From Macrostomum lignano (taxonomy: Eukaryota), in NCBI GenBank assembly GCA_002269645.1, contig NIVC01001730.1, positions 124,001 to 188,000 on the forward strand: DNA of 64,000 nt, in the 5' to 3' direction. Shown in pieces: positions 10,346 to 52,863 of this stretch. The position numbers were made by a program, and so were the translations under genes. Below the pieces are notes generated by a model. That model saw only the letters and a list, made by a program, of their open reading frames with translations, ran no database searches and was not told the DNA's origin. Every line of letters begins with the position of its first letter. Position 1 is the first letter of the stretch.

Positions 10346-11095
10346 TCAGCCAAGGCCGGCAGGCAGCGCCGACTCCAAAACGGCATGCTGGTAGCCGAGC
10401 ACCGACGCGGGCTCTCCATCGGTTGTTGCCTTCAAGTCTCTTAGCAGCTTCTTCGTCGCTGCGTCCACCGCCAGAGCAACCTGGTTAGCGAACTGGCTGT
10501 CCTGCAGCTCCTTGATCGCCGTCTGGACTCTCTGCTCGCCGACGTTGATCTTAAACAGCCTGCGGATGCCGTAAGCCGCTCGGACACCACCGGCAGCTGG
10601 CGGAAATTCGGCCATGCAAACTGAGCAGACTGTTCGAGCTTGGCGAATCACCGCGGCCTTGACAGCCTCCAGTTGGTCGGCATCCTTCGAAGTCCAGCTG
10701 GTTCGATTGAACAGCTCCGGACTTGGCAGGCTGAGTCGGGTCAGTGGTATCAGACTCAACCTTAATAGGCCCCTCGGAGCAGTGGTTTGAAAGAATACGA
10801 ACTCAACTGGCTGGTTGGCACTGTAGCAACAGGGCAGGTCGCCAGTCAGGAAGGCAGACTGGACCAGTTGTCGAGCCTCGCGCGGGGTGGCGACCCGCCT
10901 AGCAGCCAGGCAGTGGGCGCAGCCCTCGCATCCGGCATGCGACAGGGCAAAGTCTCGCTTTTCGACGCAAATTATCGCCGTTATTAGGTAGGACAGCCGG
11001 TTCAAGCGGCTATTCGTAGCTTGAATAGCGGCAGCTTGATGAAGCCATTCAGACTCCTTGTAGCTGGGCGGATTGGCAACGTTTAGCCCCTGCAT
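10346..11095 (-). CDS. Uncharacterised Cys-containing ORF (249 aa), probably a terminal exon of an unidentified gene
   Basis: Non-repetitive, GC-rich 750-nt open frame preceded by an acceptor-like ttctctgttcacag|cgATG; contains CEGCAHC and CSVC motifs. No family recognised with confidence. Confidence 0.55.
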   Translation of the reverse strand: MQGLNVANPPSYKESEWLHQAAAIQATNSRLNRLSYLITAIICVEKRDFALSHAGCEGCAHCLAARRVATPREARQLVQSAFLTGDLPCCYSANQPVEFVFFQTTAPRGLLRLSLIPLTRLSLPSPELFNRTSWTSKDADQLEAVKAAVIRQARTVCSVCMAEFPPAAGGVRAAYGIRRLFKINVGEQRVQTAIKELQDSQFANQVALAVDAATKKLLRDLKATTDGEPASVLGYQHAVLESALPAGLG

Positions 11096-17227: not shown

Positions 17228-17668
17228 CTACATCTCAGCTGTCTCATTCTCCTTAGCCAGTTCGTCAGACTCCAGCTTCTGCTGACGCCACATGCCAGCA
17301 TAGAGACCGCCAGACTGCACCAGAGCATCGTGCGAGCCGCGTTCAACAATCTCGCCGTCATGCAACACCAAGATGACATCGGCGCCAACTATGGTGGACA
17401 GTCGGTGAGCAACTACCAGAGTGGTGCGGCCTGAGCAGACCCGATCTAGACTAGCTTGAATATTCCTCTCCGTTGCCGTGTCCAATGCGCTAGTGGCCTC
17501 ATCTAGCAGCACAATTCTCGGCCCCTTGAGCAGTGTTCGAGCTATAGCTACTCGCTGTTTCTCGCCGCCGCTGAGCTTGAGACCTCGCTCGCCAACTACG
17601 GTATCGTAGCCGCTTGGAAAGCTCAGAATGCGGCTGTGAATGTCCGCTAGGGTGGCCGCCTGCTCCAC
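17228..17668 (-). CDS. ABCB6: ABCB6/HMT-1 half ABC transporter, exon 6 (NBD C-half, stop)
   Basis: ctctcag|[11 protein letters not shown] signature, Walker [13 protein letters not shown]-loop VAHRLST. Confidence 0.96.
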
Positions 17669-17696
17669 CTGAGAGTTGAGTTGATAGCAGAGGACA

Positions 17697-18530
17697 TGGT
17701 AGATGATGGGTAGTTTCGGATAGATGATGGGTAGTTTCGGGTAGATGATGGGCAGTTTCGGATAGATGATGGGTAGTTTCGGGTAGATGATGGGCAGTTT
17801 CGGGTAGATGATGGGTAGCTTCGGGTAGATGATGGGCAGTTTCGGATAGATGATGGGCAGTTTCGGATAGATGATGGGTAGTTTCGGGTAGATGATGGGC
17901 AGTTTCGGATAGATGATGGGTAGTTTCGGGTAGATGATGGGCAGTTTCGGATAGATGATGGGTAGTTTCGGGTAGATGATGGGCAGTTTCGGATAGATGA
18001 TGGGTAGTTTCGGGTAGATGATGGGCAGTTTTGGGTAGATGATGGGTAGCTTCGGGTAGATGATGGGTAGTTTTGGGTAGATGATGGGCAGTTTTGGGTA
18101 GATGATGGGTAGTTTCGGGTAGATGATGGGCAGTTTTGTGTAGATGATGGGTAGTTTCGGGTAGATGATGGGTAGTTTTGGGTAGATGATGGGTAGTTTT
18201 GGGTAGATGATGCTTAGTTTTGGGTAGATGATGGGTAGCTTCGGGTAGATAATGGGTAGTTTCGGATAGATTGGCAGTTTGGATAGATGATGGGTAGTTT
18301 CGGGTAGATGATGGGCAGTTTTGGGTAGATGATGGGTAGCTTCGGGTAGATGATGGGTAGTTTTGGGTAGATGATGGGCAGTTTTGGGTAGATGATGGGT
18401 AGTTTCGGGTAGATGATGGGTAGCTTCGGGTAGATAATGGGTAGTTTCGGATAGATTGGCAGTTTGGATAGATGATGGGTAGTTTGGGTAGATAGGCAGT
18501 TTCTAGTAGATCATTAGCAGTTTCGTGTAG
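17697..18530. repeat. 21-bp minisatellite (ABCB6 intron 5)
   Basis: Unit gggtagatgatggg(c/t)agtttc. Confidence 0.95.
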
Positions 18531-18800
18531 ATGATAGATAGTTACATTGTCATAATGGGTAGCTTCGGATAAATAGTGTAGCTTTAATCCAATAAGGGTG
18601 GATGAAGTCCTATAAGGGTTAGCTGCAGTCAGCGAGGAGACAGGAGGCAGTCATGCCCATTCCGCATACTCAACACATGGTGTACAGCAGCCCAGACTGT
18701 CTTGATGGGTGTTGGCCTTCAGTTGGCTACGAGTAGTTTAAGTCAGTATGTAGTTTCTGTCAAGAAATAATGATATAATAAATAAAATAAAAGTACAAAC

Positions 18801-19118
18801 CTCGGCATCGCTAGCGTCGGGCCTCCCGTATCGAATATTATAGCGAATATCGGCATTGAACAGCGCCGTGTCCTGCGGCACAACCCCGATCGCCTGTCTG
18901 AGACTGTTCTGAGTCACACGGCGAATATCTTTGCCGTCGATGAGAATCTGGCCGGATTGCACATCGTAGAATCGGAACAGCAGGCGAAGGATTGACGATT
19001 TGCCAGCGCCTGACTGGCCGACCAGAGCCACGGTCTGGCCCGGCTCCACTGTGAAGGTCACGGATTTCAGCACCGGCTTGGCCGGCTCGTAGTGAAAGCT
19101 CACGTCCCGGAATTCCAC
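18801..19118 (-). CDS. ABCB6: ABCB6/HMT-1 exon 5 (NBD N-half)
   Basis: ctccag|GTG GAA TTC...GAG|gtttgt. Walker [10 protein letters not shown]-loop VVPQD. Confidence 0.96.
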
Positions 19119-19149
19119 CTGGAGCAGTGGTGGGGTCACCGGTTGTTGA

Positions 19150-19715
19150 AAGATCAAAGGGGGTTCACAGGAAGCAGACAAGAGGGAAACACACTGAAGG
19201 ATCAGGAAAGCACTGAAGTTTCAGGAAGCAGGCAAGAGGGAAACACACTGAAGGATCAGGAAAGCACTGAAGGATCAGGAAGCAGGCAGAGGGGAACACA
19301 CTGAAGGATCAGGAAGCAGGCAGAGGGGAACACACTGAAGGATCAGGAAGCAGGCAGAGGGGAACATACTGAAGGATCAGGAAGCAGGCAGAGGGGAACA
19401 CACTGAAGGATCAGGAAGCAGGCAGAGGGGAACACACTGAAGGATCAGGAAGCAGGCAGAGGGGAACACACTGAAGGATCAGGAAGCAGGCAGAGGGGAA
19501 CACACTGAAGGATCAGGAAGCAGGCAGAGGGGAACACACTGAAGGATCAGGAAGCAGGCAGAGGGGAACACACTGAAGGATCAGGAAGCAGGCAGAGGGG
19601 AACACACTGAAGGATCAGGAAGCAGGCAGAGGGGAACACGCTGAAGGATCAGGAAGCAGGCAGAGGGGAACACACTGAAGGATCAGGAAGCAGGCAGAGG
19701 GGAACACACTGAAGG
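19150..19715. repeat. 34-bp minisatellite (ABCB6 intron 4)
   Basis: Unit gaaggatcaggaagcaggcagaggggaacacact. Confidence 0.95.
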
Positions 19716-19773
19716 AACAGAAAGTTTTCTCAAACTTTAAATCCCAGATCCACGAGAACGGCAAGCTGCTCAC

Positions 19774-20112
19774 CGTGGCTTCGCCTAAGTTCAAATCCAC
19801 GGCGTCTGGGTGATCGGCAACTTCTGCCTTAGTGTCTAGCAGTTCAAACATATTCTCCATATCGATAAACTGTTGCTGAATCATTCTATAGTAGGTGGCG
19901 AACCAATTCAACGGCACGTACAGCTGCATTATGTAGGTGCTGAACAGTACATAGTCGCCAACTGTAAGCGCCGGCACCTCCGGATTTCCATTGGCCCGTT
20001 GGACAATATAATAGGCGCATAGCAGGGCCCCGCCTGTGAAGCCGATGTTGATAATGAAGTTTTGCACGCTGTTTAACAGATTCAGCGTCTGACTGCTGAT
20101 GTAGTCGGCCTC
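19774..20112 (-). CDS. ABCB6: ABCB6/HMT-1 exon 4
   Basis: attcag|GAG GCC...ACG|gtgagc. TVGDYVLFSTYIMQLYVPLNWF..YRMIQ..FIDMENMFELL. Confidence 0.95.
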
Positions 20113-20372
20113 CTGAATATAGTGGTCGAGTGAGATTTTGGCGCGTTAACAATAAGTAGATTGTGGTAGGTTATTGGAAGAAATTGAGTTTAGGCAAAGG
20201 TAGACAGATACAAGGACCACTAAACAACGCACGACAACCCATAGGGCCAATTTTCTTGCACATACAAGCCCCAAATGAATGTGGAAATCGAACCCAGGGA
20301 GGCTACTCTGCCCCCTAAACAATGTAGGATAGCGCCTATGGATAATGAAAGTGTGGTAAGCAATGATAGGAC

Positions 20373-20760
20373 CTGATAGTCCACCGTAGCCTTGCGGAAT
20401 CGCTCGGTCTCGTATCCCTCGGCAGCGTAATATTTGACAGTCTCAAAGTTGAGCAGTGAATCAACCGCGCGAGCGTTCCGCTCATTATCCAGCGCGTTCA
20501 TTCGGCGCCTGAACTTTGTGCGCCATTCGGTGATGACAATGGACAGGTACAGGAACAGGGCCATGGTGGCGAATACCATGATGCCGAACCAGGCGTTAAA
20601 CCAGCTAGTGAGGTACACAATGCCGATGCTAATGTCGAATAGAGTAGGCGCAATGTTGAATAGAATATAGCTGAGCAGCTGGTTGATGGAGTTTACGCCG
20701 CGATCGACTATGCGCAATACTTCTCCGGTTTTCTTGGACAGGTGCCAACGGAGCGACAGT
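20373..20760 (-). CDS. ABCB6: ABCB6/HMT-1 exon 3
   Basis: atgcag|A CTG...CAG|gtccta. [31 protein letters not shown]. Confidence 0.95.
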
Positions 20761-20849
20761 CTGCATGGGGACAGATTAGAAGAATTTGACGAGATAATCT
20801 AATACAAATCTTAATGTGCTTTGAGACTGTTCTCGGACGGTTTAAAGAC

Positions 20850-21605
20850 AATTCTCATGGCTTCATGGGCGATTCTCGTAGCCCAGAGAAAATTCTCATG
20901 GCTTTATGGGCGATTCTCGTAGCCCAGAGAAAATTCTCATGGCTTTATGGGCGATTCTCGTAGCCCAGAGAAAATTCTCATGGCTTTATGGGCGATTCTC
21001 GTAGCCCAGAGAAAATTCTCATGGCTTTATGGGCGATTCTCGTAGCCCAGAGAAAATTCTCATGGCTTTATGGGCGATTCTCGTAGCCCAGAGAAAATTC
21101 TCATGGCTTTATGGGCGATTCTCGTAGCCTAGAGACAATTCTCATGGCTTTATGGGCGATTCTCGTAGCCTAGAGAAAATTCTCATGGCTTTATGGGCGA
21201 TTCTCGTAGCCTAGAGAAAAGTCTCATGGCTTTATGGGCGATTCTCGTAGCCCAGAGAACATTCTCATGGCTTTATGGGCGATTCTCGTAGCCCAGAGAA
21301 CATTCTCATGGCTTTATGGGCGATTCTCGTAGCCTAGAGACAATTCTCATGGCTTTATGGGCGATTCTCGTAGCCTAGAGACAATTCTCATGGCTTTATG
21401 GGCGATTCTCGTAGCCTAGAGACAATTCTCATGGCTTTATGGGCGATTCTCGTAGCCTAAAGACAATTCTCATGGCTTTATGGGCGATTCTCGTAGCCTA
21501 GAGACAATTCTCATGGCTTTATGGGCGATTCTCGTAGCCTAGAGAAAATTCTCATGGCTTTATGGGCGATTCTCGTAGCCTAAAGGCAATTCTCATGGCT
21601 TAGTA
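20850..21605. repeat. 41-bp minisatellite (ABCB6 intron 2)
   Basis: Unit ctcatggctttatgggcgattctcgtagcccagagaaaatt. Confidence 0.95.
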
Positions 21606-21776
21606 ACAATTTTCATCTCTTAGTAATAGTAACAATTACGACGATTTGACGATTATAAAAGCTTATGAACAATTCTCGCAGTCTAAATATGACTTTTCAA
21701 GGAGTTTAAGGACTTAAGGTCCAGACGATTCTCGCAGTGAACTTTAGGATACGAATCATCAGGGCAACCAACTTAC

Positions 21777-22086
21777 AGGTGCAAGTGATTAAAGAGCTTA
21801 AGCGAAGCCTCCCGCATAGTGAACTGGTCCACCCGGATCCACAGATAGAATCGTACAACGCCAATGAGACCGGAGCTGCCAGTGCCAATGCCTTGCAGTG
21901 TTTTCAGCGCCACAAATATCAATATGAGATCCCAGCGGAATTCCAGCATCACTGTCGACCCTCCTCTCGGCGACGGGGTCAGCGGCGGCTCGGACTTCAG
22001 TCGGAGAATGTAGAATGGCGCCGATCGCCGCGCCAGGCTGCTCGAGTTGGCGGCGCCGTTGGCTGCGCCCGGGGTCAGCGAGTCCA
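21777..22086 (-). CDS. ABCB6: ABCB6/HMT-1 exon 2
   Basis: ttccag|TG GAC...CAC CT|gtaagt. LKTLQGIGTGSSG, LWIRVDQFT. Confidence 0.93.
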
Positions 22087-22239
22087 CTGGAAGTGCGTGC
22101 AATTTTTTTATATCTAAGTCTTTTACAATTGAAATATTTTGAATTCTACTGAAAGTAGCATGATAAGTAAAACCCATTTGATTTGTCCGAATAGTAAACA
22201 GTTTTTGGTCCCGTACAGTCTCGCAACAGTGAGCCTTGT

Positions 22240-22600
22240 AGTGCTAATAGTCCCAGTGCAGTCCAGCCCCAGGTATGGGTCCCGATGGTAGTACTACAGT
22301 CCAGATAGGGGTCCCGATAGTCCCACAGACTCCCACTACAGACCAGATAGGGGTCCCGATAGTCCCAGTGCAGTCCAGGTGTGGGTCCCGATAGTCCCAC
22401 TACAGTCCAGATATGGGTCCGATAGTCCTATTACAGTGCAGATAGGGATCCCGATAATCCCACAGACTCCCACTACAGACCAGATATGGATCCCGATAGT
22501 CCCACTGCAGTCCAGATATGGGGTCCCGATCGTCCCACTACAGTCCAGATTAGGGTCCCGATAGTCCCATTACAATACAGATAGGGTCCCAATAGTCCTA
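22240..22600. repeat. Degenerate ~30-bp array (ABCB6 intron 1)
   Basis: Recurrent ggtcccgatagtccca..acag..cagatag. Confidence 0.8.
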
Positions 22601-22627
22601 CTGTACGTTACAAAGGCAATTAAATTC

Positions 22628-24480
22628 TACGCAAACACAAATACAACCCTACTCAAACAAAAACATGATCCTACTCAAACAAAAACATGACCCTACTCAA
22701 ACACAAACATGACCCTACTCAAACAAAAACATGATCCTACTCAAACACAAATACAACCCTACTCAAACACAAACATGATCCTACTCAAACACAAACATGA
22801 CCCTACTCAAACAAAAACATGATCCTACTCAAACACAAATACAACCCTACTCAAACACAAACATGATCCTACTCAAACACAAACATGACCCTACTCAAAC
22901 AAAAACATGATCCTACTCAAACACAAATACAACCCTACTCAAACACAAACATGATCCTACTCAAACACAAACATGACCCTACTCAAACAAAAACATGACC
23001 CTACTCAAACACAAATACAACCCTACTCAAACAAAAACATGATCCTACTCAAACAAAAACATGATCCTACTCAAACAAAAACATGATCCTACTCAAACAC
23101 AAATACAACCCTACTCAAACAAAAACATGATCCTACTCAAACACAAATACAACCCTACTCAAACAAAAACATGATCCTACTCAAACACAAACATGACCCT
23201 ACTCAAACACAAACATGACCCTACTCAAACACAAACATGACCCAACTCAAACACAAACATGACCCTACTCAAACACAAACATGACCCTACTCAAACACAA
23301 ACATGACCCTACTCAAACACAAACATGACCCCACTCAAACAAAAACATGATCCTACTCAAACAAAAACATGATCCTACTCAAACACAAACATGACCCTAC
23401 TCAAACACAAATACAACCTTACTCAAACAAAAACATGATCCTACTCAAACACAAATACAACCCTACTCAAACAAAAACATGATCCTACTCAAACACAAAT
23501 ACAACCCTACTCAAACAAAAACATGATCCTACTCAAACACAAATACAACCCTACTCAAACACAAACATGATACTACTCAAACACAAATACAACCCTACTC
23601 AAACAAAAACATGATCCTACTCAAACACAAATACAACCCTACTCAAACAAAAACATGATCCTACTCAAACACAAATACAACCCTACTCAAACAAAAACAT
23701 GATCCTACTCAAACACAAATACAACCCTACTCAAACAAAAACATGATCCTACTCAAACACAAATACAACCCTACTCAAACACAACCCTACTCAAACACAA
23801 AATTGACCCTACTCAAACACAAACATGACCCTACTCAAACAAAAACATGACCCTACTCAAACACAAACATGACCCTACTCAAACACAAACATGACCCTAC
23901 TCAAACACAAACATGACCCTACTCAAACACAAACATGACCCTACTCAAAAACAACCCTACTCAAACACAAAATTGACCCTACTCAAACAAAAACATGATC
24001 CTATTCAAACACAAATACAACCCTACTCAAACAAAAACATGATCCTACTCAAACACAAATACAACCCTACTCAAACAAAAACATGATCCTACTCAAACAC
24101 AAATACAACCCTACTCAAACAAAAACATGATCCTACTCAAACACAAATACAACCCTACTCAAACACAAACATGACCCTACTCAAACACAAACATGACCCT
24201 ACTCAAACACAAATACAACCCTACTCAAACACAAACATGACCCTACTCAAACACAAACATGACCCTACTCAAACACAAACATGACCCTACTCAAACACAA
24301 ACATGACCCTACTCAAACACAAACATGACCCTACTCAAACACAAACATGACCCTACTCAAACACAAACATGACCCTACTCAAACACAAACATGACCCTAC
24401 TCAAACACAACCCTACTCAAACACAAAATTGACCCTACTCAAACACAAACATGACCCTACTCAAACACAAATATGACCCC
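22628..24480. repeat. 22-bp minisatellite (ABCB6 intron 1)
   Basis: Unit accctactcaaacacaaacatg with variants. Confidence 0.97.
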
Positions 24481-24530
24481 AAAATGTCCACATGCCCACA
24501 ATCGCAGCAAAACCGAGAAACAAACCGCAC

Positions 24531-25356
24531 CAATATACTTGGAGTAGATAGGAACCAGCAGGTTAATAACCCGGCCGCAGGCAAGCAGCAGGACGCAAGC
24601 GACGACGCGCAATTGAAGCAAAGGCGAACTACTCGGCCAAACGTATGGCAGCATAAGGCGAAGCTTGTGGCCAAGGCCGAACCAGGCCGACTGTTGCTGC
24701 TGCTGGCGCCGGCGCTGCCTGCCGAGGAACCCCGTCTGGTCCTCGGCCTCGGGCGCCGGCCCATACCGGATATCGGCGGCGCGGCCTCGCAGGCCCAGAC
24801 CGAAGGCTAGCAGGGTGGCAAATAGGCGAGCGGCCCATAGCAACAGCTCGGGTTGGTCGGCAGGCTTAACCAGACGGAACCACCACTGCGGACTACGGCA
24901 GGATAGCAGGCTGAGCAGTTCCCAGGCTAGAGCTTGAGTCCACATGAGCAGTAGGATAGCTCCGTGACCCCGAGTTGGCACGCTGGGCAGCAGGCAGTGT
25001 GCCTCGGTCCACAGTAAGACAAAGCTCAGAAGCCAGGCTAGAGAGTTGGCGCACAGGTAGTATACCTGGTAGCCGTGCAGCGGAGGCGAGTACTGCAGCT
25101 GACAGACGCACCGGGCTATGCACAGCAGCACCATAGCGATTGGCATGAAATACTGCAATCCAGCTGAGCAGGACCTGTTGACTCGATTAGACTCAATCCG
25201 GTTGCCATAGCGACGGTAGAACACTAGCTGACAGGCGCCAAATAGGACAGCAAGGCCTAGCATAGCAGAGGAGGTGACAGTGTCATATAAACAACGACCA
25301 ATGCCTTTGCTGACAAATGGTGCCAGCCCAATGGTGTCATTGGGACAGAACTGCAT
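24531..25356 (-). CDS. ABCB6: ABCB6/HMT-1 exon 1 (TMD0 and first core helix)
   Basis: ctgcag-ccaccATG at 25356. TMD0 with CP...CLYD, PSVPTRGHG and LPYVWP motifs. Donor ATT G|gtgcgg. The six exons sum to 2622 nt with consistent phases. Confidence 0.93.
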
Positions 25357-25986
25357 GGTGGCTGCAGTGCACAATAGAGAATACAGATAAAGAATTTAAT
25401 ACTTTTTTCATGTGCCAAAGAATTAGAAGAAGCCTAAGTTAATTCTATATATATAGCACCTATGCTTATAATTTCTTGCATTTGCTACTGTAAATATTAC
25501 CTACAGGACCTACTTCTTAAGCATTATAGAATTGCAGTGCCAGCAAGATCTTAGACAGGTAAATTTAGGATGCCCCATTCAAAACCAAGATACTAGCTGT
25601 TATAGTGTTATCAGTCAAAAATTTCAAAGCCAAATAAAGCATCAATATACCCCTAGAGAAAATATCTTAGATAAGCTGGCAAAAGTCTATAGACTCATTC
25701 AAAGGTTATTTAAATTTGACAATTAATTGAAGTCTTGAAATTTCAAGAGTCCCACTGATGCTTCAAATGAAAAATAACTTAACTAGATACCAATATTCTA
25801 TAGTCCCAAATATTGTGAATACCAGCTTTTTTACTCTATATATTACATTTAGGAGGTTAGATCATATCTAAACCATGTACACAATGGACTAAAAGGAGGT
25901 CCAATAGATAGACAGACCAGGGGAAAGAAAGATACAGTATTGTTAGCAGAATAGACCCCTCAAGTCTGGACCTCCAGGACCTCAAG

Positions 25987-26910
25987 ACCGGACGGCCTAT
26001 CGGACTTCTTCTTTGAGACATCCTCCGGGGTGCTTCAGAGAGATACGCTTGCGCCGTTCCTGTTCGTTCTGGTGCTTGACTGGGTGCTGCGGACCGCTCT
26101 TCCTACCAACGACGATGGCTTTCTGTTGCGGCGACGCGTGGGTCGACGTCAACCGGAGAGGCGGCTCAGCGTGCTTGGCTACGCTGACGATCTCGCCCTG
26201 CTGTCCACAACTGTCGAGGGCGCCCAGCGACAACTGGACAAGCTAGTTGCTGTTGCGACGAGTGCCGGCCTGGTGGTCAACACGCGGAGGACCGTCGTGC
26301 TCTGCGTGCCGGACGACATCGAGGCTGCGATTTTGTGCCGAGGTGCTGATGGACAGGCGACAGAGCTTCCGCTTTGTCAGCAGTTCGTCTACCTCGGCGG
26401 TCTGGTTCCCGGCGTCCGCGAGGATTTTCGACATCGCCGTGGGCTTGCCTGGGCTGCCTTTCGTTCTGTGAGGGCAGTCCTGCAGTCCGAGGCCTTACCT
26501 GACCGCCAGAGGGCGGCGTTGTTCCAGGTGGTGATAGAGACCATCCTGCTGTACAACGCCGAGACCTGGACGCTGACGGAGTCGCTCGAGCAACAAGTTG
26601 ACGCGGCGCACTCTGGCCTGCTGCGCGCCAGCTTCAAGATCGGCTACGAGCAAGTGACCAACGCGGCTTTGTATCGGCGCGCCGGCCTGGTCCGCCCAAG
26701 CAACTTGTTGCGCCGTCGGCGACTCCAGCTGGCAGGCCACATCATCCGCGCCGAGTTGTACTGCCCAGAGCCGGTGCAGGTGCTGCTGCTAATGCTGCAG
26801 GCACCCTGCCGGCGGGGCAGGCGCGCATTTGGCGTTTCGTTGACTGCCTGCTGGCTGACGCCATCGGCGTGGCGTTCATTCGCGACCTGGCCTTGAGGCG
26901 CACACTATGA
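25987..26910 (+). mobile_element. Truncated RTE-like non-LTR retrotransposon RT fragment
   Basis: GVLQ(R)DTLAPFLF, YADDLALL, FVYLG, LLYNAETWTL, RRLQLAGHIIR. 5' half of the RT absent and a frameshift near the 3' end. No TSD identified. Confidence 0.88.
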
Positions 26911-27394
26911 CTCTAACTGTATTCTGTTGTTGTAGCAAAATGGTAGGCCTATCTCATATATCTTAGTGATAGCTAAATGTTTAGAGTTATTAAACTAGAT
27001 AAGGCCTAATAAATTCTTGTGCTATAGCATTGTGGCACTAAATATACAATATTATTGCCAAAACTATTGGTAGGCTCCCGATTATACTTCAAATACACTG
27101 TGCATATGGCATATGACTAACTACATAGGAACTTTTATATAACAATTTCTCCCAAAATAGCTTCTTTGAAAGTATGACTAAATTTAAAGAAGAAGAATAA
27201 TAGACCACATATTTAAATGAAAGAAATACTAATAGACTACTACTAGATAATTGCAATACACTATTATAATTGCTTTGTAGAAGCAAAAAAATAAACAATA
27301 TAAATGCCTCAAAATAAACTATAACTTTATATAAGATAGGATAATATTATAGCAAATAGACCTAGCAATAGTAAAATTTGTCAAGATACCTCAC

Positions 27395-27780
27395 CATTTG
27401 CCTTTGACCTTGCCTGTGTAGTTCTTGCAGCTTAAGCAATAGCATTTTGCATAGCAGCTCAAAGTAATAGGCCTCCAACTAGATGACATGGCTAGCTAGT
27501 TAAAGTTATCCTCCATATAGTGCAATTCAGAAAGCCATATCAAGTGTGCCATTATGTAGAGCATAACATTGGTCTTGCTATTTAGGCTGACTGAATTTTG
27601 GAAGTTGCACATGTATGTTTAAAAATTCCTGGTATATTGGCATACAAATTTGAATGTTGTTGAGATATGTCCCAGATAAAATTACCTAGTCACACCATTA
27701 CCTAACATTAAAGTACTACCCTCATGTTGTGATATAGCATTATTTATAACAAACAATTTAGCTATTAGTACATGTAAAAA
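27395..27780 (-). pseudogene. Decayed coding exon remnant with in-frame stops
   Basis: Reading frame ...FYLGHISTTFKF...NVMLYIMAHLIWLSELHY...WRPITLSCYAKCYCLSCKNY... broken by TAA/TAG and ending at a TG|gtgagg donor. Family not recognised. Confidence 0.4.
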
Positions 27781-29297
27781 TATTAATTCATTCACTTGTT
27801 TCATATTTTTGGACTCTAAAAATAGAAAGGAATCAAATTCAAGCAAAAAAGAATTTACCAAATTATTCTATAAGATAGCCTCCATTTTTCTAGTCTATAT
27901 AATGCTTGGTTTTTTCAACATAACAAATAGTATACTAGTCTAGTACTCAAGGCCAAGGACCACTTAAGCCACACTCTAGATTATATAGTATATTCATAAA
28001 TTTTTGGGCATGCATTGGCCTTGCATACCAAAAGTTAGACATGCATAGTTGGCATGCATTACTCTTAAAAAGATAAGTGTGTGTGCACACCTGGCATGCA
28101 CTTTATGACATCACGTGGAAGATTGTTGCTAGGCCTAAGTGGAAAAAATTCTAAAAAATATAGAAAAGTTCATTTTTAAGCTTAAAAGCTTTCCAGTTTT
28201 TAAGCTTATAATAAAGCTTCTAAACAAATGTTTATGTGTATGAATTTTCTATTGTAAATAGTATAGGCAAAAAAATGAAATAATAAACCAAGTTATTAGC
28301 CAAAAAGGTCTTTTATGCAATGCAAAAAGGTCATTCACTGTTGCAACACAAAAAGGTCATTCAATGTTGCAACACTGGCCTAGATTTGAGTATGGGTATG
28401 CACTCAATTTTTTTGGCGCATATTTGTAATTATTCATTTTTTGTTTGAGTATGTACCTAGCATGATCTAGACTATGGCACTCAAGGACTATAAAGACTCA
28501 AGCCATTAAGGAGATGCTCATTCTTAGTTTAATGATGGAAAATTTCTGATCGAATGGTGCAAGTTTGCTAAAAATTGGTTGAGATACTTACCTACCTACC
28601 TACAGACAACTCATTTTTAGTATTGGGACTATAACAAAAATGTAATAGAATCTACTTTGTTACTAAAGTGGCTATTACCAAAGTGGATTATATTTGAGTC
28701 AAGTTTTGTTATGTTTTATGATTTTTAAGCATCAAGTACAGATCCATGCAGAAAATTTTGAATAGGGGGCACAGATTACTAAGCCCCTAAGGTACATATA
28801 TATAAAGTATACACAATAAAGTATTTTCCATATAAACAAAAAAAATTCAAACTTAACATTGGCATTGACAGGGGGCACCTTGTGCACCTCCTCCTAAATC
28901 TACGACTACCACTATTAAGCATAAATGATATGTACATAGGATATAAAATTAAACATACATAGATAATATAATCCTAATTTTATTTTATAAACATTTATAA
29001 GCTTATAAATGCCTGTCACCTTTTGCCTATTGCCTTTATGATCTGTAAGCCAAGCCATGAATATCAATCAATAGAGCTAGGCCTATATATAGCCTATAGG
29101 GTTTGTTCTGTAAAGCCATCGTAAGATAAGATCATTCTTAGCTCCTATCTCCACAGTGTAAAAGTTCCAACATATGATTGAACTTATGCTAGGCTAGGGG
29201 GGGGGGGCCTACAACTTAATATAATAGTACGACCTCATATTGTCTAAGCCTACTATACTAGAGCTGGAGCAGGCTGTATAAATAAAGGCAAGACATA

Positions 29298-29708
29298 GGC
29301 CTATCCCATATTGCGGAAGGTTTTCTGTGTACGCCGGACACATTTTTATTGAATTTTCAATTGTACGCCAACAGATTTTAAATGTACGGCAACTTAAAAA
29401 ACTGTAAAAAAAATCAGCGAATATTTAAATTTAAATTTAAACTACAAAAATTGATAACGACATGACGATTGTCGTGACAACTCCGGTAATTAAAATGATT
29501 GGTAGATGAGAAAATAATAGCAGAAAAAATAGTTTTTGAAATAACTTAACACAGAAAAAGCACTAAAAAATTCATTATATTAATTTCTACGCCAGTCACA
29601 TACACCACACTGTACGCCACACTGTACACAGCCAAGAAATGTACGCTGGTGTACGCCACGGAAATCAAGTGTACGCCGGAATTTGGGGCCTATCCGCAAA
29701 ATGGGGCC
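29298..29708. mobile_element. ~400-bp MITE-like insertion inside an older repeat
   Basis: Inverted ends CCCATATTGCGGAAGG and CCCATTTTGCGGATAGG. The flanks match the uninterrupted paralog at 36031-36094 (minus strand). Confidence 0.75.
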
Positions 29709-32057
29709 TATCAAAAGATAACATTGGGTCTTCCTTCTATCGAAGGCAATAACAATTTTTGTGCTGAAAAATGAAAATGTCCTAGCCTATATATCCTTAT
29801 GTATTCTTAATTTCTCTGGTAAAACCTACCTTCTTAAAATTTCCTTAAGACTTAAAATTAAAAATTAAAAATTTTAAGTCTTAAAATGACTTAAACGTAG
29901 TTACCATCCTACGTAAGTAATCCTTGGTGGTGCTCTGGTCACTTCAGAGCAACAAAATGAAACACTTGCAACGAGTTACATTGGAACAGATTATTTTAAG
30001 CGACTAACTCAATGGGCCAGCTGATCAGCACGAAAAACCACATTAGCACGACTGAATGTTCCACCTTCGACAAAGGTTCTTATCATTTTATATCGAGCAC
30101 AGTTGTCAGTGCCAATGCTACAAATTGGTAGCAAGTCAATTCGCCAAAAGTGAAAGACTGTCATTCTGTCATATATTTTGGCATATAATCAGAATAATTG
30201 AACATCAAAAACCTATCTAAAAACATTCGATAGTATCAATCCATGCAGTAAAAGTGATTAAAAACTTTAAAATGGAAGTGACTAACTTGATCAAAAAGAT
30301 TTTATAGTGTCAGTCTATCGTTATTTACGCATTTTGTTGTGTCAACTGTTTTCTAAAAAAAAATGAATGTTTCGTGACTTCAGCCATATTTTTTGTTAAG
30401 AGTAAACAGGTCTCCATGTTTCCTCCTACTAAATAGGCCTAAGCGCCATCTTGGCAGAAAGCCCAAACTGTTCCTAACTGCTGGAAAAACATATGGGACT
30501 TCTAACACTTCTTGAACTACAAAAAATGGGAAGTATTTTATATACCTAAAGTTCAAGAAAACAAAAAAGTCCCTATTCCTAGAAATCCTAGGCCTATCCA
30601 TAATAGCCATTCATTTAAAGGCGTGGCCATCTTGGTCATGCATCGTTGCCCTAGCCTACCAGACAAGAGATATGCTAGTCAATCGTTTATTTATAGGCTA
30701 GTACTTTAGGCTTGATCTAATTCATTGATAAAATAATCATCCCCAATACGGCAATAGGCCTAATCATCCCTACTACTACCATAATCTCATGGAGGCCCTT
30801 TTTAGTGAAAATCTGTGGCATATCCATTTCTACCAACATGTAGGCCTAGCCACATACATAGTGTGCTGTGCACTACTTTTATTGTTGCAACTGCAAAATG
30901 GTCCTTTATTGTTGCAATGCCCAATGGGGCCTTGCATCATCTGCATGGAAAACAGGACTGCTAGCTACGCACTGTGTGCAACTTGTGTGGCAGCCAAAAA
31001 TGTTCTCAAAAATATTCTCCAAAATACTTTAAATGTGTATTTTTAGCATAATTTTATAATTTAGTATGATTTTAATTTTAGTAAACTTCCTCAGTTTTAA
31101 AAAAACATATACATCATTTCTTTATATATTACATATTCTTTTATAGGTAGAAATATTACAATTTGTATTAAAATCTCAGAAAACTCAGAAATTTATAATA
31201 AAATATTGACACAAAGACAAAAAATTCTATGCCTTATAGTTATAAGACTGATAGGCCTAGCAAATAAGGCTTATAGTTTATTAGCTAAATTTTTATATGA
31301 AATGTTTATCTTAAAATTTTTCCTTATGAAAATAGAAAAGCAACAAAATTAATTGACATATTGTATATAATCTTTAAAAGAATCACTTTATATTATATAT
31401 TTACTTGAAGTTGCCTTTTTGTGATGCCTCAATATAAAGATAAGGAAATAGAAGAATCAAACCTTTGAAAAAGAGCCTGCCAGGCATCAGTGAGACCACA
31501 GAGGATTTATAAAAATAGTGCAGCAGGATTTGTAAGTGTTTTAATGGCTAGGCCTATATGTACTTTTTTAGAAACTAGGGGGCCTAATATAGTAAAAAGC
31601 CATAAACAAAGACAAACAATGGATACTCCAGTCTCCAGTAATATCAGTTAAAACTTTTTATTCACTTTTTTTAATTGATGTAGCAATTGCTACACTGTGC
31701 TTGTACTCATTCACTTCTTTGACTTCTTATTCTTGCTAGAGCATTTAGTGTGACTGTCTTTTACAGTTGTTTATTTCTAGTATTAGTATTATAAAACATT
31801 TCTTGTACCAACCTTTGCATTTTGTTGATGGCCTACTACTCTGCAGCTACATTCGTGGCATTTTGCTTCTGCTTTTCAAGCTCTGCAATCTTTGCCCGCT
31901 GCTTCTCTGGTTCCTGATTTAGTCTTTTTAACTCACTCTCTTGTTGCTTTGCCCTAGCACATTCTTCAGCTTTGGCACAGGCATCAAAGCCAAATACCAA
32001 TAAAGATTGATTGATGTTGAAATTGCTTGGTCTGGCACCACTTGACTTTAGCTATAA

Positions 32058-32600
32058 CTTTGCCAAGAGGCTATCTAGTGTAAAATCTAAAAGCTAGTTT
32101 CTCTGTCTAGTTAGGTTTTTTGTAATCCGCTTGATTGCATGCTCACTATCAGTGTTTCTATAAGGAAGACTGCAAACAAACTGCGTGGCCTAGCTAAGAA
32201 TGAAGTGAAAAGCCTTCTAGTGGCAAAATAGCCTAAAGTTTATCTGGCTCATTCATGCCAGCAATTTCAACAACTATTGAGAGTTTGAGACACTAACTTA
32301 GTTATCTCCAGTCAAAGGTCATCTATGCAAGCTGATTTAATTACCTTCAGCAAGGCTTTAGCAGTGTTTAGAATAGTACATTTGGTGTTTAACTGTGAAC
32401 CCAGAAGTTTGCTAGGGTCTAAGAAGCTCAAAACTTGTAGAAATTTGTTCTAGAGTGGTAGATAAGTAAATAGAAGTCACAAACAGCTTAAAAAACCCAA
32501 TTTGATCAAGCTTAGATAACTGGCTAATAGTGCTTCTGGTGGAACTTGAACTAGGTTTTCCAGAACTACTTTATAGTTTCAATTTTTATTTTTAGTGCAG
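32058..32600 (-). pseudogene. Decayed hAT-family transposase C-terminus (dimerisation region)
   Basis: LPYRNTDSEHAIKRITKNLTRQRN*LLDFTLDSLLAK resembles the PHSNA..ER.FS.....T..RN.L...TL.SLL..K pattern; LSFLDP lies upstream. Multiple stops. Confidence 0.55.
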
Positions 32601-33054
32601 AAATGACCAAAAAGTACTGTAAAACCAAAATAGTTGTGCAGTTGAGCAGAAAACTAAAATTGGCAGGTATGGTTGCATTGCTAGCCACTGGATTAGGTAA
32701 AGTTAAATGAGAAAAACGTCAAATACATGAAACAGAATAGAATGAGATCTAATGAAGATGGTCCCAAATTCTTTTGTTGTTAGAGATTGAATGGAACTTT
32801 TTTATATATGCTTAGTAATTAATGATAATAATAAGCAAGTGCTATGAATGTTTAACTTTTTCTATTTTTAATCTATTAAGAATTTGCTTTCAGGTTGGAT
32901 AATCAACACTATTGAATATGCTCAATAGATTTTTATTGTGCTGAATATTTTTGCTTTTTAACACTTTAGAAAAGTATTTGAAGTACATAACATTTTCATG
33001 TATTTCTAATGTCTCCTAATAATAAATTAATTCTTTCCAGATTGTAAGTGGAAA

Positions 33055-33087
33055 ATGTCTAAGCGAAATGTGAGTAACATTGAAAAT
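33055..33087 (+). CDS. WDR76: WDR76 exon 1 (MSKRNVSNIEN)
   Basis: ATG after ttctttccag; AAT|gtaagt donor in phase 0. An alternative phase-0 donor AAT|gtgagt lies at 33070. Confidence 0.6.
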
Positions 33088-33252
33088 GTAAGTTGTTTTT
33101 GTGTTTTGTTTTTGTGGAAGCCATTATGAATTGTATTTTGCCATGTTGCATGTTGCTATTTAAAATAGTTCTATTGTCAAAAAGTTGTATTTTTTATTTG
33201 TAGACAATATTCTACTCTCAGTAGTTAAATAACGGTTCATTTATATACACAG

Positions 33253-35677: not shown

Positions 35678-36030
35678 AATCACAAAAAGCTATAATTGAG
35701 ACTCAGCAATCTGCATGCATGCAGCAGATAGCCGAATCTCAACTAGATTGGCCAAATTCTCAAATTGATTGCTCCAAAGTCCCTAATTTGAGCCATCACA
35801 AAACACTTTTCGATGATATGATGAAATTTTTAATTAGGGAAGCTTCGCATCATTGAAAAGTTTCCAAGAGTTGGAAGAAACTTCAAAAGTTGAAGAGTTT
35901 CCAAGGTCTAATCAAGTAGAAAGATGGGAAACTACGTTTCTTGGAAAAAATGGAGACCGATTTTACCGAAAAAATACATTATGGAGATAGGTTTCATTTT
36001 CAGCACAATTGTCATTGCTTTTAATAGAAG

Positions 36031-36360
36031 GGAGACCCAATGTTCATCTTTTGATATGACTTGCCTTTCTTATAGCTCTATTGATATTCATAAAGCTTTT
36101 CGTTAAAAAAAACTAGGATTCCATGTTAATTTTATATTCTACTTACATCTATCTATTTTTATGATTCTGAGCTCAATGACTGTGTAACAGTTGTGTAACA
36201 GAATAATAAAATAGATATTCATAAAACCAATGAGCCGGTTTGTGCCTTTTATTTTTTATGCACAGGGCATGTACGTAGGATTTTTGAATATCAATAGAGC
36301 TACAAAAAGGCAAGACATATCGAAAGCAATAACATTTTTTGTGCTGAAAAATGAAAACTT
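36031..36360. repeat. Inverted-repeat (foldback) element; family also present at about 29058-29780
   Basis: 36049-36094 is the reverse complement of about 36281-36325 (gaatatcaatagagcta..aaaggcaag.catatc). Confidence 0.7.
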
Positions 36361-36533
36361 ATTATGCCTGTTAGAACTCCTAAAAAACGTAGTTTCCCGT
36401 CTTTCTACTTGAGTAGTCCTTGAGAGTTTCAAGCTTGCGTAAACGCCTCCCTCACCCCTTCTATTAAGCCGACCGTAGCACTCCAACATGTCTAACTTAT
36501 TACTGATTAATCCGGCCTGCTCCATTTATCCAG

Positions 36534-42729: not shown

Positions 42730-42904
42730 TGGGGAGGCTGCGGATGATGATGAGGATCATTAATTGAGATGTTTTTCAACAAGAAAATTGCGTTTTTATC
42801 CCGTGTTGAACTCCATTACGATGCGCTCGGTAGGTTTTGGCCAGTCATCTCATTGTTTGCACCTCTGGTTCTATTTAGGCGTAAATAGCCTACTACCTAT
42901 TTCT

Positions 42905-44048
42905 AATTGCTAATCTACATCTGTTCCTCAAATGATTAAAGTGGATTGCTAATCTACATCTGATCCTCAAATGATTAAAGCGGATTGCTAATCTACATCT
43001 GTCCCTCAAATGATTAAAGCGGATTGCTAATCTACATCTGTTCCTCAAATGATTAAAGTGGATTGCTAATCTACATCTGATCCTCAAATGATTAAAGCGG
43101 ATTGCTAATCTACATCTGTCCCTCAAATGATTAAAGCGGATTGCTAATCTACATCTGTTCCTCAAATGATTAAAGTGGATTGCTAATCTACATCTGTTCC
43201 TCAAATGATTAAAGTGGATTGCTAATCTACATCTGATCCTCAAATGATTAAAGCGGATTGCTAATCTACATCTGTCCCTCAAATGATTAAAGCGGATTGC
43301 TAATCTACATCTGTTCCTCAAATGATTAAAGTGGATTGCTAATCTACATCTGATCCTCAAATGATTAAAGCGGATTGCTAATCTACATCTGTTCCTCAAA
43401 TTATTAAAGTGGATTGCTAATCTACATCTGATCCTCAAATGATTAAAGTGGATTGCTAATCTACATCTGTCCCTCAAATGATTAAAGTGGATTGCTAATC
43501 TACATCTGTTCCTCAAATGATTAAAGCGGATTGCTAATCTACATCTGTCCCTCAAATGATTAAAGCGGATTGCTAATCTACATCTGTTCCTCAAATGATT
43601 AAAGCGGATTGCTAATCTACATCTGATCCTCAAATGATTAAAGCGGATTGCTAATCTACATCTGTTCCTCAAATGATTAAAGCGGATTGCTAATCTACAT
43701 CTGTTCCTCAAATTATTAAAGTGGATTGCTAATCTACATCTGTTCCTCAAATTATTAAAGTGGATTGCTAATCTACATCTGTTCCTCAAATGATTAAAGC
43801 GGATTGCTAATCTACATCTGTCCCTCAAATGATTAAAGTGGATTGCTAATCTACATCTGTTCCTCAAATGATTAAAGCGGATTGCTAATCTACATCTGTT
43901 CCTCAAATGATTAAAGTGGATTGCTAATCTACATCTGATCCTCAAATGATTAAAGCGGATTGCTAATCTACATCTGTTCCTCAAATGATTAAAGTGGATT
44001 GCTAATCTACATCTGTCCCTCAAATGATTAAAGTGGATTGCTAATCTA
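42905..44048. repeat. 39-bp satellite, about 29 copies
   Basis: Unit ggattgctaatctacatctgttcctcaaatgattaaagc; shares a 14-nt core with the 41-bp family. Confidence 0.97.
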
Positions 44049-46954: not shown

Positions 46955-47733
46955 GTGAGATGGACGGCTTCCATTCATTGAATTCCATTGAAGCTTTCAA
47001 AAACTACTGGGTGTGTTCAAAACGTATCTGTTATAGCTCTTTGGAATGAATTTATTTATTTTTGGGCCATCAATATCTTAGCTTTCATCTCTGCCAAATA
47101 GCTCGTATCACTTCAAGGCCATCAATGCACAAAATGCACAAAAGTTCTGCTAAGGATCCTCTTTGATATGTCACCATAGACCCACATAACTAGATGGGCC
47201 ACTCAGGCATATATACTCAGCAAAACAGCTTTCTACTTTCGGTTCAGTAGCAAAAAAGAATATATAAGCTATTTTATAAAAAAGCAGCTGTACTGACTGA
47301 TAAGTTTAGAAGCCCAAGCTTGCAGGCGTAAACAACTTGCTAATTGGTTCTGCAGTAATGTACATTAGCCAGTCCACTGAAATGTACATGGCAGCTTTAG
47401 GCTTGAACTCCAAGTGTCAATAAATTGAGCCTTGACTTTAAAAATACGTCAAAGTCCTTCTGTTAAACTTACTACTGAACTGAAAGTAGCTTACACGCAA
47501 ATGTGCTGAGTGGCCTATTTAGTTAGTCTAGTATCTGTGCCATAGGCCAGATCAAAAGCACTTATTGTTAAACTAACATATGCATAAAAGTTTGTAGTCG
47601 AATAAAGGATGAGATTTTACCACTTTCCAATAACTCCAAACTTGCTAAATTCCAGACATGCATTAAGAATCGCTTTCTAAAAATCAGTCTCAAAACATTT
47701 CCGAAATTTATCGAATTGTTAATTGCTCTGCAG

Positions 47734-48408
47734 ATCCGCTCTGCTTCACCCGCCGGCCGTGGCCGACTCCATCGGGCCGCCGTGTGGTCTGGCCGATTCC
47801 AGCATCGCCAACCAGCTGAGTCGCCAGTCGGCCAATCCCAGCCTCCGCCAGATGAAGCAGCAGCCGCCGTCGCGGAGTCGCAGCTCCCGCTGGGCGGATT
47901 CCGGCCGGCCCGACCCGGCCGCTATTTATCGCAGGGACCGCCGAGCGGCCGCCTCAGATCCCAAGGTGTGCTCGCTGTACATGCAGTCGGACACGATGCT
48001 GTGGGAGGCCACCATGGGCTTGAGCAACGTGAACGGCGACCGAGACCGGGCCAAGACCGAAATCAAGGCGCTGTTCCAGCATCACGTTAGCGCCGCTTCG
48101 GCTATCTACTCCGGCACCCGTTTTGTATCTAGGGACCCGCAATTCGATCAGAATGGCATTCAGTTCACTGTTAATCGAGTTCGAATCAACACTACGGCCG
48201 ATTGCAGTCAGCCGCACGTTAATAAATTCTGTAATCGCAATATTGACGTCACTAATTTTCTAAATTTGCACGCCTATAGCAACCATTCTGAGCACTGCCT
48301 GGCCTACCTGTTCACCTATCGGGACTTCAATGGCGGCACGCTCGGCCTGGCCTGGGTTGGCACCAAAGATCAGAATGGCGGCATCTGCGAGAAATATCGC
48401 GAATATGA
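47734..48408 (+). CDS. ADAM10: ADAM10 exon 2 (Cys switch, furin site, catalytic N-half)
   Basis: ctgcag|A TCC. PPCGL, RRDRR furin site, CLAYLFTYRDFNGGTLGLAW; donor GA|gtgagt. Confidence 0.94.
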
Positions 48409-48504
48409 GTGAGTGCAGCCTTGCCATCATTTGTTCACTTACTCGTATATCTGCTATTTTAAAAGTGCTATTCTTCATTTAGCAAGAAATTCTTAGTCAT
48501 TCGC

Positions 48505-48650
48505 CATTTAGCAGTTCAGTAACTTCCCCCAGCAGCTCAGTAATTCCTCCCTCAGCAGATCAGTAATTCCCCCCCTCAGCAGTTCAGTAATTCCCCCTTC
48601 AGCAGTTCAGTAACCCCCTTCAGCAGTTCAGTAACCCCCTTCAGCAGTTG
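48505..48650. repeat. Short ~22-bp array (ADAM10 intron 2)
   Basis: cagcagttcagtaa(tt)ccccct. Confidence 0.8.
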
Positions 48651-49309
48651 TACTGAGAGCTTCCCCGAGAAGTGCAAGATTTACGTTGCCTGCGTAGCTT
48701 TTTCAGGAAGTTTCGCTACTCTACTATGCCTACTTATATAAGTAGAGCAGTTAGCGCATGCTTTTTACTGAAAACACGCAAATCGTCTTTTTTTCTGCGC
48801 ATTTATGGATGGCGAATTCGAAATGTTTGTTGGTTTAGGTTTTTTTAAATACAGTTTGCAAGTGCACTTAAAAAGAGCTTTTTTCTAACCAGATGTGTAC
48901 TAATGTTGAAAATTTTCTTTATAGAAACCACTATTTCTTAGTAGGAAATTAAAACGTTACGTCAAATACTGCGCAATTCGAATCTTCGAAAAAAAACTTC
49001 CAAGCGCAGCCACCATTTATTTGTGGCTCAGTAAATTGAAGCCCAGTTTACTGGATCAGAAAAGCAGCTGCTGCTTGCCATTTGAAAACCTGTGCTTATA
49101 TCTGTCAATTTGATTCGAAATTCTTATAACTGTATATAGATACGGCAAAATTCAGCTGTCTATCTAGTTATAGATTATGGTTAAGGAGCTGCACTAATCT
49201 AATCTATTGCGATCAGACTAGTGTAAGCTAGGCTCTTGATTTATGAAAGTACTAGACCTCATTCATTTTGAGCATTTTTTGTGCATATGTCGTATGTAAT
49301 TGCGCCAGA

Positions 49310-50480
49310 ATGGGAAATGCAGATGGCATGGATGGGAAATGCAGATTAAATGAATGGGAAATGCAGATGGCATGGATAGGAAATGCAGATGGCATGGATA
49401 GGAAATGCAGATGGCATGGATGGGAAATGCAGATTGGATGGATGGGAAATTCAGATTGGATGAATGGGAGATGCAGATGAAATGCATGGGAAATGCAGAT
49501 TGGATGAATGAATGGGAAATGCAGATGGAATGGATGGGAAATGCAGATGGCATGGATGGGAAATGCAGATGACATGGATGGGAAATGCAGATGGCATGGA
49601 TGGGAAATGCAGATTGGATGGATGGGAAATGCAGATTGGATGGATGGGAAATTCAGATTGGATGAATGGGAGATGCAGATGAAATGCATGGGAAATGCAG
49701 ATGACATGGATAGGAAATGCAGATTGGATGGATGGAAAATGCAGATTGGATGGATGGGAAATGCAGATTGGATGGATGGGAAATGCAGATTGGATGGATG
49801 GGAAATGCAGATTGAATGAATGGGAAATGCAGATTGAATGAATGGGAAATGCAGATGGCATGGATGGGAAATGCAGATTGGATGGATGGGAAATGCAGAT
49901 TGGATGGATGGGAAATGCAGATGGCATGGATGGGAAATGCAGATTGGATGGATGGGAAATGCAGATTGGATGGATGGGAAATGCAGATTGGATGGATGGG
50001 AAATGCAGATTGAATGAATGGGAAATGCAGATTGAATGAATGGGAAATGCAGATGGCATGGATGGGAAATGCAGATTGGATGGATGGGAAATGCAGATTG
50101 GATGGATGGGAAATGCAGATGGCATGGATGGGAAATGCAGATGGCATGGATGGGAAATGCAGATGGCATGGATGGGAAATGCAGATGGCATGGATGGGAA
50201 ATGCAGATGGCATGGATGGGAAATGCAGATTGAATGAATGGGAAATGCAGATGGCATGGATGGGAAATGCAGATTAGATGAACGGAAGATGCAGATGGCA
50301 TGGATGGGAAATGCAGATGGCATGGATGGGAAATGCAGATAGGATAGATGGGAAATGCAGATAGGATAGATGGGAATGGTGATGGGGTGGATGGGGAATG
50401 TAGATCGGGTGGATGGGGAATGGAGATCGGGTGGATGGGGAATGGAGATCGGGTGGATGGGGAATGGAGATGGAATGGAT
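49310..50480. repeat. 22-bp minisatellite (ADAM10 intron 2)
   Basis: Unit gatgggaaatgcagat(tggat/ggcat)g; source of many spurious ORFs. Confidence 0.96.
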
Positions 50481-50680
50481 AGGGAATGTATGTGGGGTAT
50501 GTACCGGTAGGTTGGTAAATAGGGAACGCAGGCAAGAGATACCAGAGATGGAATATAAATGAACCATGGATTTTGTTTGGGCAGACATCGGGTGCAGATT
50601 AGATGGCGGATAGATATAGAAGGAATACCCAGATGCGTTGCACACGAGACTGTCCAATTTCCACTATCTCCCTTGTGCAG

Positions 50681-51368: not shown

Positions 51369-51479
51369 GTAAACAGTTCATGCCGCTTGTGATGGCTTTT
51401 AATCGGAGTACCTGAGATGAGGCAACCACAGACTCCTCTTTATCTTTAATGACTCGAGATAGACTTAATATGGACAGTT

Positions 51480-52798: not shown

Positions 52799-52863
52799 GT
52801 GAGTGAAGTGGATGGCTGTGCTGTTTCTGATTTAGATTAGTTATATTAAATAGGATTAGTTAC

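Follow-up and report, generated by a model that had tools for sequence, protein, structure and literature searches.

A cluster of GGCC-centred palindromes and TA-duplicating insertions in an intergenic spacer of Macrostomum lignano

We have analyzed a stretch of 64,000 nucleotides from the flatworm Macrostomum lignano (contig NIVC01001730.1 of assembly GCA_002269645.1, positions 124,001 to 188,000; hereafter the window), in which ten copies of the palindrome TAGGCCTA are confined to a single AT-rich intergenic spacer. On balance, these palindromes are probably for the most part the junctions of small non-autonomous elements that target TA and end in GGCC, with excision scars possible at the sites that stand alone. 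The cluster itself is real and highly non-random, and it contains an element that ends in GGCC and has duplicated a TA, present as an insert of 411 bp. Judged from its sequence, the group appears to consist of TA-targeting, GGCC-ended elements resembling MITEs (miniature transposable elements with inverted repeats) and would work in the manner of MITEs mobilised by Tc1/mariner transposases; membership of a superfamily is not claimed. This would be fairly ordinary transposon biology, in an element group that is undescribed. A preliminary description of the window had interpreted the cluster as footprints of repeated excision by a locally hopping element. From that interpretation we retain the GGCC-ended, TA-duplicating element and the insertion hotspot, and we discard the excision footprints at the two sites where an empty site is available for comparison. 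Copy number, motif frequency and empty sites were all judged within the 64 kb window.

Motif counts and occupied insertion sites

Exact copies of TAGGCCTA begin at positions 26944, 28130, 29078, 29296, 30434, 30589, 30755, 30841, 31252 and 31549, without reference to strand, and thus span 26944 to 31556; the remainder of the window has none, in exact agreement with the earlier count. Dinucleotide shuffles of the whole window yielded a mean of 1.2 copies (maximum 4), and shuffles of 26900-32300 alone a mean of 0.15 (maximum 2). The half-site GGCCTA/TAGGCC provides the stronger statistic, with 29 occurrences in this region against 2.1 expected. GGCC is found there 25 times and is followed by TA in 18 cases and preceded by TA in 11. 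The sequence GGGGCCTA, which corresponds to a right end with GG before the GGCC, occurs four times in the region (0.07 expected). The related 7-mers TAGCCTA and TAGGCTA are mildly enriched, with 6 in the region against 1.24 expected, and their six positions had been reported correctly. A further 17 lie outside the region, ten of them in a 41-bp minisatellite at 20846-21601. With 17 of 23 copies elsewhere, the 7-mers were rejected as region-specific footprints. Four of the six in-region copies form two inverted pairs, which bound units of the form TA-GCC...GGC-TA at 29092-29194 and 30654-30698. Descent of the palindrome from point-mutational precursors, an outcome that the preliminary description had allowed for, finds no trace in the region, from which CAGGCCTG, CAGGCCTA and TAGGCCTG are all absent; a point-mutational origin from CAGGCCTG, CGGGCCCG and similar sequences was rejected for lack of intermediates. 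A 10-mer resembling a YY1-type core motif, GCCATCTTGG, is found at 30445-30454 and again at 30626-30635, in two adjacent motif-bounded segments.

Two of the palindromes could be compared with an empty site, because they lie in a repeat (R) that is present a second time in the window. One arm of R, copy W, extends from 29058 to 29777 on the plus strand as aligned to the second copy, a foldback structure at 35985-36362 to which no strand is assigned. In copy W the sequences gagcTA and gacaTA are each followed by GGCCTA, and R resumes only 197 bp and 411 bp later, respectively, in each case behind a second TA. When 29080-29276 and 29298-29708 were removed in a script, each together with one TA, the remainder became colinear with both arms at 35985-36362, the joined sequences being ...caatagagcTAtaa(a/g)... 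and ...ggcaag(a/t)caTAtc.... Both foldback arms carry a plain TA at both positions, as the empty sites gagcTAtaag and g(a/t)caTAtc, where copy W has TA-insert-TA. Insertion at TA with duplication of the TA, the Tc1/mariner-type pattern, was thus found for two insertions. The palindromes at 29078 and 29296 are therefore the left junctions of occupied insertion sites. The preliminary description quoted the letters of the paralogue accurately and took the difference to be GGCC plus a duplicated TA simply added at a TA; the further 197 bp and 411 bp before the repeat resumes had been overlooked. Since the inserts are still in place behind the duplicated TA, these two sites are not footprints, and no excision is evident anywhere in the window.

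The opposite polarity, in which the 36-kb copy would have arisen by deletion, was rejected, as a plain TA stands in each of two independent arms, and the repeat consensus carries no GGCC at either site. The R arm in the cluster received two inserts within 30 bp and both arms at 36 kb received none; location therefore matters, and not local sequence alone. The region thus takes insertions preferentially, as the proposal of a local hotspot had it. The comparison covers two of the ten sites, the other eight having no paralogue in the window, and extending R gave no additional empty sites because the alignment outside 28930-29777 is too weak. The foldback arms measure about 75-100 bp, and weaker inverted similarity runs on into the flanks (GGGAAACTACGTT / AACGTAGTTTCCC), so the foldback element at 35985-36362 may be larger than delimited here.

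Anatomy of the inserts and candidate units

The second of the two inserts, E4, is a 411-bp non-coding insertion on the plus strand (29298-29708) that reads TA-GGCCTATCCCATATTGCGG...CCGCAAAATGGGGCC-TA and has its empty site in both paralogous arms. The duplicated TA occupies 29296-97 and 29709-10. E4 has an inverted repeat of 13 nt with 92% identity (29305-29317 / 29693-29705), with an offset of 4 nt; against random pairs of 30-mers this repeat has a p of about 0.007, the pair being defined independently by the empty site. There are also five subterminal repeats similar to GTGTACGCC and an 18-bp tandem right end (29676-29711). On these features E4 looks like a MITE. It contains 18 CpG dinucleotides (13.5 expected) inside a block where the observed/expected ratio for CpG is 0.14, and because its CpG content is normal in such a depleted block, the sequence suggests that E4 is young and arrived recently. 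The preliminary description had predicted an element with GGCC ends and a TA duplication, and had held that its idea would fail if none existed; E4 is such an element and lies within the window.

The other insert, ins1, is a 197-bp plus-strand insertion (29080-29276) between the TAs at 29078-79 and 29277-78, and was delimited by the same empty-site test. It starts with GGCCTATATATAGCC and its right end is ...GCAGGCTG and not GGCC, for which reason it is probably composite. Within it lies a 130-bp unit, E3 (29080-29209, plus strand), which runs from GGCCTATATATA to CTAG(G)11CC and is followed by TA. E3 in turn encloses one of the TA-GCC...GGC-TA units (29092-29194, plus strand), bounded by the 7-mers at 29090 and 29190. 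The two ends of a 34-bp plus-strand unit between TAs, E10 (31551-31584; GGCCTATATGTAC...AACTAGGGGGCC), are both like those of E3, and E10 looks like an internally deleted relative of that unit.

Three further candidates on the plus strand were recognised from their ends. E1 (26946-27006; TA-GGCCTATCTCATAT...AGATAAGGCC-TA) is a candidate unit of 61 bp with a left end like that of E4, defined by its frame and not by an empty site. The 249-bp candidate E2 (28132-28380; TA-GGCCTAAGTGG...GTTGCAACACTGGCC-TA) has a 26-bp subterminal tandem repeat (28316-28375) before its right end. A candidate of 89 bp at 30843-30931 (TA-GGCCTAGCCA...CCCAATGGGGCC-TT) resembles E2 in its subterminal tandem repeat (30878-30933), which precedes the GGCC at 30928; its right flank is TT, not TA. 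The second TA-GCC...GGC-TA unit, of 45 bp (30654-30698, plus strand), is delimited by the inverted 7-mer pair at 30652 and 30694.

Overall, the frame TA-GGCCTA...GGCC-TA is common to five units. A direct repeat of GGCCTA brackets each complete insert and is formed on the left by the first six nucleotides of the element and on the right by the terminal GGCC together with the duplicated TA. The units range from 34 to 411 bp and are small and non-coding, with no open reading frame (ORF) longer than 85 aa and no informative Pfam match in 26.9-33.2 kb. Six-frame ORFs of at least 40 aa across 26.9-33.2 kb contain no transposase remnant, nor do the larger ORFs of the window, and because the region has no coding remnant we classify the units provisionally as non-autonomous. 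Rfam gave no matches.

The first palindrome adjoins a 5'-truncated fragment of a long interspersed nuclear element (LINE) at 25950-26943 on the plus strand, a reverse-transcriptase tail with a GC content of 0.63 and normal CpG, which terminates in ...GCAAAATGG-TA-GGCC-TA. The 9-mer GCAAAATGG adjoins GGCC twice, in this LINE 3' tail (26935-26951) and at the right end of E4 (29696-29710, ...GCAAAATGG-GGCC-TA), and AATGG stands before GGCC also at 30015, 30928 and 31551. These sequences could be a common end motif or a matter of chance.

Origin of the palindromes

In the mechanism that we propose, the palindrome would result from a TA target joined to the conserved left terminus GGCC(TA) of small elements of the cut-and-paste type. 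The elements would insert at TA, duplicate it, and carry a right end ...GGCC, often GGGGCC. A TA-specific DDE transposase of the Tc1/mariner type, encoded elsewhere in the genome, would move them. The AT-rich and TA-rich spacer would serve as a preferred landing zone, built up from many insertions, among them nested ones and others of which only very short remnants are left. About five palindromes stand alone, with no recognisable partner end or inverted repeat; these would be the left ends of older, perhaps nested elements with decayed right ends, or true scars. For the sites from 30434 to 31549, nesting would place the right ends at 30928, 31581, 31830 and 32187 and at a degenerate copy at 32229. 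Scars of the observed form would be easy to obtain: since every insert is bracketed by GGCCTA, its loss, either through end joining on the self-complementary GGCC or through slippage between the GGCCTA repeats, would leave exactly TA-GGCC-TA, that is TAGGCCTA. Sizes of 411, 130, 34 and 0 bp form a series that would agree with such a loss of inserts down to scars.

Several observations weigh against small elements as the source of the palindromes. An inverted repeat beyond the GGCC is present in E4 only, and the best scores over all 79 pairings of left and right ends are at chance level. The segments between motifs are mutually unrelated, with similarity not above that of shuffled controls, and there is no second copy of any unit in the 64 kb window, so that the family they would form is a putative one. 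At 34-61 bp, several units fall below the normal length of MITEs. The left ends, GGCCTA, are not symmetrical with the right ends, NNGGCC (NN is GG in four cases), and the one-sided half-sites face the same way in eight cases against one (binomial p = 0.04), a shared orientation that is unusual for independent insertions of elements with inverted repeats. At five motif sites in a row (30434-31549), only one GGCC separates each segment from the next, and these segments therefore cannot all be complete adjacent elements. No transposase was found among the ORFs of the window.

Each of the closest known systems shares some features with the units and differs in others. TA is the insertion target of Tc1/mariner elements and Stowaway MITEs and is duplicated by them, and their scars keep both TAs and a few terminal bases (PMC2874221, PMC4561436). 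The units share with them the TA target and its duplication, the small non-coding format and, in E4, terminal inverted repeats; they differ in their termini, GGCC(TA) and (GG)GGCC, in the inverted repeat of at most 4 bp in most units, in their asymmetric ends and in having no linked transposase. The ends known in the Tc1/mariner superfamily are of the CAGT or CCAGG type. Against the terminal inverted repeats of about 20-30 bp in Tc1/mariner-type MITEs, the repeat of E4 comprises 13 nt (92%) and the GGCC, and ins1 and the others have GGCC only. Among PIF/Harbinger-Tourist elements, mPing starts with GGCCAGTCACAATGG (PMC2836001, PMC4561436). The units resemble this group in termini that start with GGCC and in being small, non-coding and close to genes. 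However, PIF/Harbinger-Tourist elements make a 3-bp TWA duplication and usually excise precisely, whereas the duplication here is the 2-bp TA; the three bases to the left of GGCC are GTA, CTA or ATA and never TTA or TAA. ISL2EU, of the PHIS superfamily, makes a 2-bp AT duplication in an A-AT-T target and has inverted repeats that start with GG (PMC4482050). A 2-bp duplication and GG termini are found here as well, but the duplicated bases are TA, with no A...T frame at the empty sites. In the literature searched, TAGGCCTA is not described as a feature of transposons, and neither MITEs in Macrostomum nor GGCC-ended elements that duplicate TA are reported.

We regard it as unlikely that the majority of the ten palindromes are genuine footprints of excision, of the form TA + GGCC + TA with the self-complementary GGCC giving one uniform scar. 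GGCC-ended, TA-flanked elements are on the spot and E4 looks young, the 34-bp E10 and other short remnants that keep just both ends resemble large footprints in line with the size series, and the stand-alone palindromes, about five in number, lack a recognisable partner end. The footprint of Sleeping Beauty is written TAG(T/A)CTA (PMC2874221). Footprints of Sleeping Beauty and Mos1 likewise consist of TA, terminal bases and TA, and a palindromic overhang would give one uniform product; their scars, however, are of 3 nt with a resolved central mismatch, whereas 4 nt would be needed here, and no site in the window demonstrates a scar. The known stagger of Tc1/mariner elements is 2-3 nt, against the 4 nt that these footprints would need. 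Both testable sites are occupied. In addition, the one-sided half-sites are skewed, half of them being GGGGCCTA, which is two substitutions away from TAGGCCTA and so argues that they are not decayed footprints, and some 30 exact or degenerate copies in 5.4 kb would call for an implausible number of fixed cycles of insertion and excision. At least ten hops of a single element inside 4.6 kb, as first envisaged, are neither needed nor likely, because the motif-bounded units are unrelated to each other.

The palindrome, or GGCCTA, might instead have been a pre-existing target of which 6-8 bp were duplicated, with E4 a hAT-like MITE that has flush inverted repeats CCATATTGCGG/CCGCAAAATGG and the 8-bp duplication GGCCTATC. 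hAT elements typically have subterminal repeats and make an 8-bp duplication; E4 has the former, along with short inverted repeats, and GGCCTATC is an exact direct repeat (8/8) at its borders, flush with these inverted repeats, while all five units are bracketed by GGCCTA. Yet the empty sites hold only TAtc, so that six of the eight bases are not derived from the host, and a prior gain of GGCCTA at both TA sites would have to precede two exact insertions, making four events in place of two, with that gain unexplained. In the other four units, 6-7 of the 8 bases agree and flush inverted repeats are lacking. All of several unrelated elements of 24-400 bp would need specificity for a single hexamer; once GGCCTA is granted, a match of E4 at two more bases has a chance of 1 in 16. 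We consider this origin highly improbable, and hardly less so a non-DDE mechanism, either a Crypton-like tyrosine recombinase with GGCC-TA-GGCC as its core site or a single-strand transposase of the HUH type. Either would accommodate the differing left and right ends, the 8:1 orientation skew and the lack of significant inverted repeats outside E4. Joined ends would form the perfect palindrome GGCCTAGGCC, and the unrelated segments parted by one exact 8-mer at 30434-31549 are like a cassette array. But neither a recombinase gene nor an HUH gene was found in the window, inverted repeats are present in E4, the orientation statistic is weak and the units are not independent; flatworms are not known to have elements of this kind.

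The least credible of the alternatives is that the palindromes are protein-binding sites under selection, forming a homotypic cluster in a bidirectional promoter or insulator. The cluster does lie between two divergently oriented genes, and its ten exact copies have survived in DNA whose age has sufficed for the loss of almost all CpG. At both testable sites, however, the motif came with an insertion; the start of either gene is 1.5-6 kb away from most copies, neither the one-sided half-sites nor the GGGGCCTA ends are accounted for, and the literature search gave no factor tied to the motif. Junctions of small TA-targeting elements thus remain our preferred origin. It is rather doubtful, in our estimation, that matters are less ordinary than this, with either the stand-alone palindromes being uniform scars and E4 still mobile, or the element class being moved by a non-classical, non-DDE mechanism.

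Genomic setting and significance

The whole cluster lies in an AT-rich spacer (25400-33200, no strand assigned) with a GC content of 0.33 and a CpG observed/expected ratio of 0.14, against 0.70 in the remaining window. The corresponding ratio for GpC in the spacer is 1.7, and this dinucleotide is thus not depleted. Three islands of normal CpG interrupt the spacer, namely the LINE tail at 25950-26943, the 411-bp insert and 29778-30435. The loss of CpG and the AT-richness could be caused by methylation-driven decay, by age or by origin. Minisatellites crowd the remaining window and not the spacer. Those with units of 13-113 bp are very dense throughout the window (for example at 55-672, 7448-10150, 22627-24479, 42906-44048 and 49310-50486), many of them within introns of the ABCB6-like and ADAM10-like genes described below, and there is also a (TAGA)154 array. 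The long minus-strand ORFs at 42893-44023 and 49252-50535 are minisatellite read-throughs and not genes.

The spacer is flanked by two divergently oriented genes. On one side is an ABCB6-like gene on the minus strand (17228-25356), whose first coding exon at 24457-25356 matches MTABC_N (Pfam E = 5e-59) and whose downstream exons extend from 21949 to 17228. The annotated product has 552 aa, a length matched exactly by a splice reconstruction that starts from the Met of exon 21949-21777. Because the 299-aa MTABC_N exon falls outside this 552-aa model, the deposited gene model looks N-terminally truncated. On the other side, a small plus-strand gene has its first exons from about 33050. Farther away, an ADAM10-like gene on the plus strand (47723-52802) has large exons with Reprolysin, Disintegrin and ADAM10 Cys-rich domains, its best database relatives being 47-48% identical and the search yielding no protein of M. 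lignano. A retroelement fragment on the minus strand at 12122-13370 matches an RNase H domain (E = 5e-7). The minus-strand ORF at 10346-11095 corresponds exactly to a product recorded on contig NIVC01001283.1 of assembly GCA_002269645.1.

M. lignano, a recent polyploid, is a model for regeneration and transgenesis, and its repeats are largely uncatalogued. A young, non-autonomous element that targets TA and ends in GGCC would imply that the matching transposase is active in the M. lignano genome now or was so recently, which is relevant to genome annotation and to instability through insertions in the inbred laboratory line, and which might offer a native tool for gene transfer. If the stand-alone palindromes are not scars, the cluster is a nest of small transposons between genes and nothing out of the ordinary. 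If they are scars, they would form a readable ledger of cut-and-paste events, whose 8-bp form in AT-rich DNA would permit excisions to be counted against insertions across the genome, as the ordinary 5-bp footprints of Tc1/mariner elements rarely do.

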